This document shows positions 55,882-56,288 of a DNA stretch of 64,000 nucleotides, piece by piece. This DNA is from Pelomyxa schiedti (taxonomy: Eukaryota; Protista; Evosea), in NCBI GenBank assembly GCA_020536535.1, contig JAHLWZ010000859.1, forward strand, positions 1-64,000. The letters are read 5' to 3'. The notes under the pieces were generated by a model. It made no database searches and was not told the DNA's origin. It worked only from the letters and a program-made list of their open reading frames with translations. The first letter of the stretch is position 1. The number at the start of each line of letters is the position of its first letter. The translations under genes and the position numbers were made by a program.

Positions 55882-56151
55882 TTCCGAGCTGTTAAATTTC
55901 TACAGCGAGAAGTTCGGAGGAGGTGATCTAACTCTTTGGGTAGCACCTTACACCAGTGCTCTTGTCCCTGTTGTCCATGTTCATACCGGTTGAGATCAAG
56001 AAGGACACAAAAAAAATATTGTTCAGGCCGGTGGTCGCGCTGCAGTGCATCAATGTAATTTCAGAACGCCTAAATTTCGAAGAAGATTGTTGTGCCCTGC
56101 CCCTCGAGGCACACCGACACCCGGAAGTCCAGACATCGGCGCACCAAATTC

Positions 56152-56232
56152 GATGTAAAGTTACAAGCTTTATGCAATAACCGCTTTGCTACGTCCCCTT
56201 GATAGTTTGGGGACGGCGGGATTCGAACCCGC
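56152..56232 (-). tRNA. Circularly permuted tRNA-Thr(UGU): 3' half (56232-56208), 9-nt linker, 5' half (56198-56152)
   Basis: The minus strand reads GCGGG TTCGAAT CCCGC CGTCCCC A aactatcaa GGGGACG TA GCAA AGCGGTTA TTGC A TAAAG CT-TGT-AA CTTTA CATC. All four stems pair perfectly. U8, A14, G18G19, U33, A37 and TTCGA are present. Confidence 0.85.
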
Positions 56233-56276
56233 GATTGATTTTGAGGGGTGAAAGACACAAACAGCACCGTAGCTAA

Positions 56277-56288
56277 TTTATTTTTATA
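56277..56288 (-). promoter_or_regulatory. TATA-like box upstream of the permuted tRNA unit
   Basis: Minus-strand TATAAAAATAAA begins about 25 nt upstream of the leader helix, which starts at 56263. Confidence 0.55.

Follow-up and report, generated by a model that had tools for sequence, protein, structure and literature searches.

A permuted tRNA gene at the tip of a structured RNA

We analyzed a 64,000-nucleotide stretch of DNA from the amoeba Pelomyxa schiedti (hereinafter the window, to whose full length all coordinates refer), which carries a threonine tRNA gene with the anticodon UGU whose back half comes first. This gene constitutes the tip of a conserved and expressed RNA of ~270 bases, the two flanks of which pair with each other over their full length; all features of the RNA lie on the minus strand. 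The 3′ part of the tRNA (56208-56233) comprises position 48, the T arm (GCGGG UUCGAAU CCCGC), the acceptor 3′ strand (CGUCCCC), and an A as discriminator. It is separated from G1 by a 9-nt linker, AACUAUCAA (56199-56207), which varies among the paralogues, and is followed by the 5′ part (56151-56198), namely the acceptor 5′ strand (GGGGACG), the D arm, the anticodon arm, and a terminal CAUCG. The permuted order accordingly reads T arm and acceptor 3′ strand at 56233-56208, linker, and acceptor 5′ strand through anticodon arm at 56198-56156. When rejoined, the halves form a cloverleaf with an acceptor stem of 7 bp, a D stem of 4 bp, and anticodon and T stems of 5 bp each, with the break falling in the variable loop (positions 44-48). 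The anticodon loop reads CUUGUAA, and the window copy displays the conserved tRNA nucleotides U8, A14, G18 and G19, U33, A37, and the T loop UUCGAAU, along with a G-C Levitt pair (15-48) that is A-U in the asparagine paralogue described below. No CCA is encoded in the linker region of the window tRNA. ARAGORN made no tRNA call in the window, and Rfam at its gathering thresholds returned no match there; callers that assume the linear order (ARAGORN and the Rfam tRNA model) are expected to miss the locus because the gene is permuted.

Following the RNA from its predicted 5′ end, we first encounter the GCCGAUG strand of a helix P-1 (56291-56297), which pairs with CACCGGC (56033-56027) both in independent folds and in cofolds. 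An A/U-rich internal loop (56274-56290) that contains TATAAAAA (56288-56281) then leads to the 5′ strand of a helix P0, GCUA-C-GGUGC (56264-56273), whose partner is GCACU-GC-AGC (56048-56039). The closing-helix leader (56243-56263) is divided into P1a (56263-56252) and P1b (56248-56243), and the AAAU strand of a 4-bp helix H (56238-56241) stands beside the break; H is AAAU/AUUU here, as against AAUU/AAUU in the asparagine copy. Beyond the tRNA lie, in order, the AUUU strand of H (56146-56149), a 17-bp G:U-rich hairpin (56108-56145), the closing-helix trailer (56088-56105, with its P1b strand at 56105-56100 and its P1a strand at 56098-56088), a 39-nt side branch with a conserved UUCGAA motif (56049-56087), and a conserved 3′ block (56027-56048) made up of the P0 strand, the loop GCGAC (56038-56034), and the P-1 strand. 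A run of eight T residues (T8; 56009-56016) follows downstream, and a promoter-type motif, TCCCACAATTCACACTCA or TCCCACAATKCRCACTCA, which resembles the Dictyostelium upstream sequence element (DUSE) and the proximal sequence element (PSE), lies upstream (56344-56361) and is conserved in all paralogues. An earlier note on this DNA had named the leader and trailer, the hairpin, TATAAAAA, and the T8 on the minus strand, and each is present at the position it gave. The hairpin is, as described there, an uninterrupted stem with exactly seven G:U pairs, the remainder being Watson-Crick. A polymorphism at 56141 (G>A on the plus strand), seen in one RNA run and one DNA run, changes a C-G pair of this hairpin to U-G.

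A family of paralogues with a compensatorily maintained scaffold

We searched the whole genome (52,367,397 bases in 5337 contigs) for related loci. The published single-cell assembly of this anaerobic amoeba comprises 52.4 Mb in 5337 scaffolds and is accompanied by Smart-seq2 transcriptomes (PMC8887013). The paper describing that genome does not mention tRNAs (PMC8887013), and a full-text literature search combining 'permuted tRNA' with 'amoeba' yielded nothing relevant. DNA searches recovered two Thr-AGU copies (86% identical) that form an inverted pair on a single contig (C1130), and two Asn-GUU copies on contigs C836 and C636, which are 77% identical to the window copy and identical to one another. 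A covariance model built from the 176-nt core and run on the genome further matched two distant full-length members (C790:198455-198627 and C802:3310-3473; hereinafter L099 and L100, respectively). In these the closing helices and hairpins occupy the same positions with unrelated sequences, and the anticodon loops read CAG and UAA. The family as recovered hence consists of the Thr-UGU gene of the window, two Thr-AGU genes, two Asn-GUU genes, and the two distant members. Position 37 is A in the threonine and asparagine members and G in two members with leucine anticodons; likewise, the discriminator is G in the asparagine copy, matching the ordinary asparagine tRNA, as against A in the window copy. 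Since position 37 and the discriminator follow the anticodon, the sequences favor a true tRNA role.

The earlier note had proposed that the permuted tRNA sits inside a larger folded minus-strand RNA, and that this fold should surpass both shuffled controls and the opposite strand. RNAfold on the minus strand of 56080-56270 gave -75.6 kcal/mol (z -4.75), with none of the 200 shuffles as good, and recovered exactly the closing helix, T arm, acceptor stem, and hairpin; the plus strand gave -60.4 kcal/mol (z -2.36). The closing helix between the leader (56263-56243) and the trailer (56105-56088) is both predicted by RNAfold and kept in the paralogues, and the anticipated covariation was borne out by the four close and two distant copies, which retain the helices through compensatory changes. 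On an alignment fitted to the covariance model (A6), 94.7% of the cells pair, as against ~50% when partners are slid by 1-3 columns, and 42 of 59 pairs are changed on both sides, with none of 500 shuffles reaching the pairing and change values; the fit somewhat inflates the pairing figures. That each sequence on its own folds into the same architecture argues against an artefact of the fitted alignment: the three distinct close sequences, folded singly, yield the same closing helix, hairpin, T arm, and acceptor stem. Broken down by helix, changes on both sides are seen in 9/11 pairs of the outer closing helix (helix 1), in 3/6 pairs of helix 2, and, across six distinct sequences, in 14/17 pairs of the hairpin, which in L099 and L100 is a G:U-rich stem of 16-18 bp with unrelated sequence. 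The acceptor and T-stem pairs also covary among the paralogues. The 4-bp helix H (helix 3) is 82% paired and offers weaker evidence than the other helices.

The outer helices P0 and P-1 are found at equivalent positions in five distinct members, either in full-length folds or in cofolds of the 5′ and 3′ flanks. For instance, P0 of L100 is GUGUC/GACAC as against GGUGC/GCACU in the window, which amounts to three pairs changed on both sides, and the A.C mismatch of the window P0 is A-U in the asparagine copy. Similarly, the fourth pair of P-1 is G-C, A-U (L099), or G.U (L100), and its fifth pair is A.C, G-C (Thr-AGU copy), or A-U (L099 and L100). As segments 56297-56291 and 56273-56264 covary with the 3′ block, they are part of the RNA. 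Conservation on the 3′ side of the trailer runs to 56027 and stops there, and on the upstream side it runs to GCCGATGC at 56297-56290. Across the three close paralogue types 28 of the 30 positions of the 3′ block are identical; its exact 30-nt form is present in the genome only at the five close loci, for which reason we dismissed the exact form as a general signal, and a related block, CACUUAGCGCUACCAUUGG, is found in L099 and L100. We also rejected a box C/D small nucleolar RNA reading of the 3′ region, as the asparagine copy does not conserve the CUGA and the boxes come in the wrong order. The side branch (56049-56087) displays a YUUCGRA motif in all five distinct members compared, and we found no conserved fold in it. 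Of two metagenome scans, the first based on the conserved 3′ block and the second on the leader together with the T loop, neither returned a match, and no orthologues were added.

A scan for bulge-helix-bulge motifs in five members found none at matching positions, with counts at or below the shuffle mean in all except the Thr-AGU copy, and the four matches in that copy clash with the T stem and the hairpin. We accordingly rejected a bulge-helix-bulge at the junction: the matches are at chance level, and their positions differ between members.

Using a second covariance model together with fetched loci, we identified at least six further permuted tRNA loci (on contigs C690, C267, C505, C1289, C483, and C578). 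Three of them (L101, L123, and L125) make up a second subfamily that shares the 5′ motif GGAGCUCCAAU and a downstream T-run; in L101 an upstream motif, CCCAUAAU or CCCCUAAU, precedes this 5′ motif by ~65 nt, and both L101 and L125 have 5′/3′ terminal pairing of their own. On these partly checked cases, long terminal-stem scaffolds around permuted tRNAs seem to be general in the Pelomyxa schiedti genome. We also came across a paralogous pair of loci on one contig (L102 and L103; C233:9060-9480 and 28470-28890) that start with GGCGATGCAATTGAAGTGTGCTACTTC ~60 nt after CCCATAAT and contain a TTCTTCGAATTTTG motif that is also present in the scaffold family. In L103, a T-arm-like GGGTTC...GAATCCC is split by an insert, and judging from these sequence features the pair may represent another scaffolded or intron-bearing tRNA-like gene.

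Putative promoter and terminator, and RNA ends

The earlier note had taken TATAAAAA for a TATA box driving a transcript of 180-250 nt. Neither suggestion held up. The segments on both sides of it (56297-56291 and 56273-56264) are the ones that covary with the 3′ block. The A/U-rich loop around it varies in length among the close paralogues, and L100 and L099 have 6-9 unrelated bases in its place. Comparison of the copies hence indicates that TATAAAAA probably lies inside the transcript and is probably not a promoter. As a core promoter it is disfavored by the lack of an A/T-rich stretch in L099 and L100 and by its position within the RNA, which is likely ~273-290 nt long. The motif at 56361-56344, in turn, is retained by all close copies amid surrounding sequence that has diverged. 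It has 56 matches in the genome, as against three for a reversed control, and in the six U6 small nuclear RNA (snRNA) genes examined ACCCATAAT(TCA) stands 66 nt before the start of the Rfam model. From the start of the motif to the first base of P-1 the distance is 64 nt in the window, 65 nt in the C1130 copy, 63 nt in the C836 copy, and 63 nt in L100; it is 65 nt to the equivalent 5′ motif in L101 and 72 nt in L099. In other words, the motif lies 63-65 nt from the predicted 5′ end in five of six family loci, and its CCCAYAAT form is shared with the U6 genes. It also stands 60-70 nt upstream of many protein-coding ATGs, which makes it a general promoter element rather than one specific to RNA genes. 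An attempted listing of RNAs that start with GNCGAUG ~60 nt after CCCAYAA was swamped by protein-coding genes with an ATG at that place.

Some further observations concern this element and the small RNA genes of the genome. The form (T/A)CCCA(C/T)AAT is very common in promoter-proximal positions genome-wide, often in both orientations; it resembles the DUSE of Dictyostelium, and bears what we take to be a loose likeness to the vertebrate Staf/ZNF143 site. U6 snRNA genes are present in at least 20 copies spread over many contigs. Downstream of the promoter motif, in the form CCCACAAT, we noticed a pair of paralogous small-RNA-like sequences (L018:1500-1760 on contig C820, and L029 on contig C268), which share ...AACAAGTGGACATCATTTGTGTCG.AAGACAGTTTC...CACCCGCAAAGCGTGGTGC... 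and have no Rfam match at E-values up to 0.01. The former locus also includes a U11 snRNA (L018:46-181).

At the other end of the RNA, every family member has a run of 6-16 T residues ~10 nt past the 3′ block, with an intervening spacer that is not conserved. This constancy fits the earlier suggestion of termination by RNA polymerase III (Pol III) at the T-tract: the T8 of the window is likely a Pol III terminator, and it is because of the conserved T-run that we infer Pol III as the polymerase.

Evidence for expression comes from RNA contigs of oligo-dT-primed single-cell libraries (two runs of one study), which bear out the supposed transcription of the structure. Between 54500 and 57500 the contigs cover only 56025-56198 and the neighboring gene at 56479-57219. 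In one run (X2), contigs 56099-56198 and 56025-56128 have depths of 145 and 138, and in the other (X1) shorter pieces have depths of 594 and 1840, which may include paralogues. The depth of the neighboring gene is ~4-17, and the RNA depth on 54500-56014 and 56217-56418 is 0; as there is no coverage on either side, DNA carry-over is excluded. One contig begins at a transposase adaptor (56099) and reaches 56198, which is exactly tRNA position 1, with two unaligned letters beyond it. The other covers 56025-56128 without a mismatch and then continues into 23 untemplated T residues on the plus strand, which correspond to a poly(A) tail on the RNA. The RNA species seen accordingly runs from G1 through the trailer to 56025, followed by an untemplated A23, and its 3′ end lies 1-2 nt past the terminal stem and 9 nt before the T8. 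The cleavage of the linker that the earlier note had envisaged, and on which its two-piece scenario depends, is thereby seen at the place where RNase P would cut, with the trailer still attached. Since the 5′ end at G1 belongs to an RNA that carries the trailer, the linker is cut before the trailer is removed.

A proposed clamped precursor and the alternatives to it

We propose, with an even balance of confidence and doubt, that the locus encodes a permuted pre-tRNA which is held by a long clamp, has its ends processed first, and is finally joined. The primary RNA would most likely be ~273 nt long (~56297 to 56025), transcribed by Pol III from the CCCAYAAT-type promoter element and ending at the T8. 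Its 5′ flank would pair with its 3′ flank in four helices (P-1, P0, P1a, and P1b) to form a long irregular rod, ending in a three-way junction with the 17-bp hairpin and the 4-bp helix, from which the permuted tRNA-Thr(UGU), broken in its variable loop, would hang. The earlier note had supposed that the flanks could guide ligation, and they do form a conserved clamp at the variable-loop break; we suggest that the rod keeps the two tRNA parts in register, replacing the bulge-helix-bulge of algal and archaeal permuted tRNAs. RNase P would cut the linker at G1, a cut end that is seen, and RNase Z cleavage and CCA addition would presumably come next. The 3′ tail would be trimmed to the terminal stem, where the end at 56025 is seen, and what remains would be a nicked pre-tRNA in two pieces, closely resembling the split tRNAs of archaea. 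Lastly, we suppose that cleavage at the variable loop would remove the clamp and that ligation of the two halves would yield an ordinary class I tRNA.

Several lines of evidence are consistent with this clamped-precursor pathway. In the folding models the structure is significant on the minus strand only, with strong covariation in all helices; the RNA is abundant and specific and has an end at G1; the promoter motif is shared with U6 at a like distance and the T-run is conserved; the genome has two genes for catalytic subunits of the tRNA-splicing endonuclease (on contigs C292 and C526); and known permuted tRNA genes also have a paired leader and trailer and a T-stretch (PMC3978253). Other results weigh against it. 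The sole RNA species seen in the contigs is unjoined, with no joined tRNA, circular intermediate, or junction-spanning read among them, and contigs from oligo-dT-primed libraries cannot show the leader piece, small mature tRNAs, or circular RNAs. Lacking a bulge-helix-bulge, the RNA offers no recognizable signal to the known joining machinery. The transcription start (from covariation) and the polymerase are deduced rather than mapped. In the alignment of close paralogues conservation is at least as high in the flanks and the 3′ block as in the tRNA body, and in L100 the scaffold, the promoter motif, and the terminator (T16) are intact whereas the tRNA body looks degenerate (C33, no U8, and one acceptor mismatch); a scaffold conserved over such a body suggests, on comparison of the copies, a role of its own for the scaffold. 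The genome moreover contains ordinary genes, unrelated in sequence to the permuted ones, for Asn-GUU (at least six), Thr-AGU (two), and Thr-UGU (two), which lie in dense tRNA arrays and have A34 anticodons and T-run terminators. With ordinary multi-copy genes for all three anticodons, the permuted RNAs are not needed for decoding, and the idea that they are the sole source of these anticodons is ruled out. This redundancy, together with the strong conservation of the scaffold and the degenerate body of L100, favors a role for the scaffold. As a separate matter, the arrays of ordinary genes that we noted (C1662:453-3482 [L073], C213 [L078], and C1955 [L063]) are dense and recall the tRNA arrays of Entamoeba; the first holds 11 tRNA genes in 3 kb, with a palindrome around its Thr-AGU gene.

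These results bear unequally on three other explanations. One of them, to which we assign a rather low likelihood, is that the two-piece RNA is itself the end product and the halves are never ligated, in which case it would be a two-piece tRNA that can be charged, or else a tRNA-like particle, bearing an outsized variable domain. The one RNA species seen is abundant and is cut at G1 but intact at the break in the variable loop; the pieces would be held to each other by more than 40 base pairs; the break lies exactly at the variable-arm position, where class II tRNAs bear their long arm; there is no splicing motif; the conservation of the scaffold exceeds what a throw-away flank needs; and the topology is like that of the tRNA-like module of YrlA and of permuted transfer-messenger RNA (tmRNA), the best, albeit sub-threshold, Rfam matches. 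It has to be set against this that oligo-dT libraries favor polyadenylated by-products and intermediates, such that the species seen may be a minority, and that a tRNA appendage of ~190 nt is without precedent in translation. In a more specific form, which strikes us as doubtful though slightly more plausible, pieces of ~93 nt and ~174 nt would constitute the mature particle, with the rod, hairpin, and 3′ block projecting from the variable-arm position; the particle would be a chargeable split tRNA or a YrlA-like, tRNA-mimicking ribonucleoprotein (RNP) with a function that ordinary tRNAs lack.

The redundancy with ordinary tRNAs and the scaffold kept over the degenerate body of L100 would also suit a structural or regulatory noncoding RNA, an explanation we regard as improbable, in which the tRNA part is a protein-binding mimic, as in the YrlA and Y RNAs bound by Ro60, and the terminal stem and 3′ block are a protein-binding site. 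YrlA, the best Rfam match, has its T arm, acceptor, and D arm permuted in the same way, and three features typical of Pol III RNP RNAs are present, namely the terminal 5′/3′ stem, its conserved asymmetric loop (GCGAC), and the T-run. The genome also encodes a TROVE-domain protein of the Ro60/TEP1 family (a multi-exon gene at C807:26546-27809 that covers domain positions 46-442), although the family members and this gene lie on different contigs and are unlinked; we know of no Y RNA or vault RNA from Pelomyxa schiedti. The YrlA score (26.2 bits against a threshold of 69) is, however, explained by ordinary likeness to a tRNA, there is no Y_RNA match, and the 7-nt anticodon loops, U33, and the fitting position 37 and discriminator would be unneeded in a pure mimic. 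Far less credible still, and already disfavored, is the notion that the loci are decaying duplicates or a functionless mobile tRNA-derived repeat, and the RNA an aberrant transcript polyadenylated by surveillance. Redundant decoding, the poly(A) tail on what is probably a Pol III product, and the occurrence of identical copies and inverted pairs would suit this notion, but dozens of compensatory substitutions keep every helix, even in L099 and L100, the promoter motif and terminator stand at fixed distances, and the RNA is tens of times deeper than neighboring genes.

Significance and comparison with known systems

Circularly permuted tRNA genes were reportedly described by Soma et al. in 2007, and to our knowledge they are known only from a few algae, one nucleomorph, and one archaeon. 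Those cases depend on a bulge-helix-bulge motif and a circular intermediate. The amoebozoan family differs in having no bulge-helix-bulge, a compensatorily maintained scaffold, an external promoter element shared with U6, and end cleavage before any joining. If the halves are joined, a eukaryote must have a new mode of recognition for tRNA cutting and ligation; if they are not, Pelomyxa would provide the first case of a two-piece tRNA, or tRNA-like particle, that is nuclear. In both cases the outcome is relevant to the origin and persistence of split and permuted tRNA genes.

The known permuted tRNA genes come from Cyanidioschyzon merolae, prasinophyte green algae, the Bigelowiella natans nucleomorph, and Thermofilum pendens (PMC3978253). 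In these genes, as in those of Pelomyxa, the 3′ part precedes the 5′ part on one strand and a short linker separates them (1-74 nt in the known cases, PMC3978253; 9 nt here). The two groups also share leader-trailer pairing, a downstream T-stretch, and the lack of an encoded CCA, and both have the internal A and B boxes in the opposite of their usual order, such that an upstream promoter is expected. Unlike the known genes, those of Pelomyxa belong to an amoebozoan rather than to algae or an archaeon, and break the tRNA in the variable loop (44-48) rather than at 20/21, 37/38, 50/51, or 59/60. The Pelomyxa genes also lack the bulge-helix-bulge that is present in the known genes, and in place of a short motif have flanks of ~190 nt that form a covarying scaffold with a 17-bp hairpin and a 3′ block. 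The order of processing differs as well, in that here linker cleavage precedes any processing of the junction, whereas the algal pathway forms a circular intermediate first.

A second parallel is with the split tRNAs of Nanoarchaeum equitans and Caldivirga maquilingensis, in which two pieces that await joining are held by a long leader-trailer duplex and the acceptor stem (PMC3218864), as they would be here after linker cleavage. In contrast to these, both pieces derive from a single transcript in Pelomyxa; furthermore, at the end of the archaeal duplex the splicing endonuclease cuts a bulge-helix-bulge, a motif that has no counterpart here.

In topology the RNA further resembles YrlA (RF02553) and permuted tmRNA (RF04321), which also combine a T arm, a looped acceptor stem, and a D arm, end in a distal stem, and are RNase P substrates. 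In a permissive search, matches were confined to the tRNA-like core and stayed below threshold: YrlA scored 26.2 bits (E-value 0.0018; threshold 69) over the T arm, acceptor, and D arm only, permuted tmRNA 23.6 bits (threshold 47) over the T arm and acceptor only, and the Rfam tRNA model 22.4 bits (threshold 29). The Rfam Y_RNA model gave no match on 55950-56420 at E-values up to 10, and neither a Ro-binding consensus nor a tag reading frame was found in the window RNA. The complete anticodon arm with sense anticodons and the eukaryotic host set the present RNA apart from both YrlA and tmRNA.

Finally, among amoebozoans, Dictyostelium small RNA genes (Class I RNAs and snRNAs), whether transcribed by Pol II or Pol III, have a DUSE ~60 nt upstream of the start (PMC7919456). 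The Pelomyxa genes are like these DUSE-dependent genes in combining a C-rich element, at a matching distance from what is in Pelomyxa a predicted start, with a terminal stem of the 5′ and 3′ ends and a T-run (PMC7919456). The Dictyostelium Class I RNAs, however, are 42-65 nt long and not tRNA-like (PMC7919456), and compared with the DUSE, the CCCAYAAT element of Pelomyxa also occurs near coding starts and is hence not specific to noncoding RNAs.

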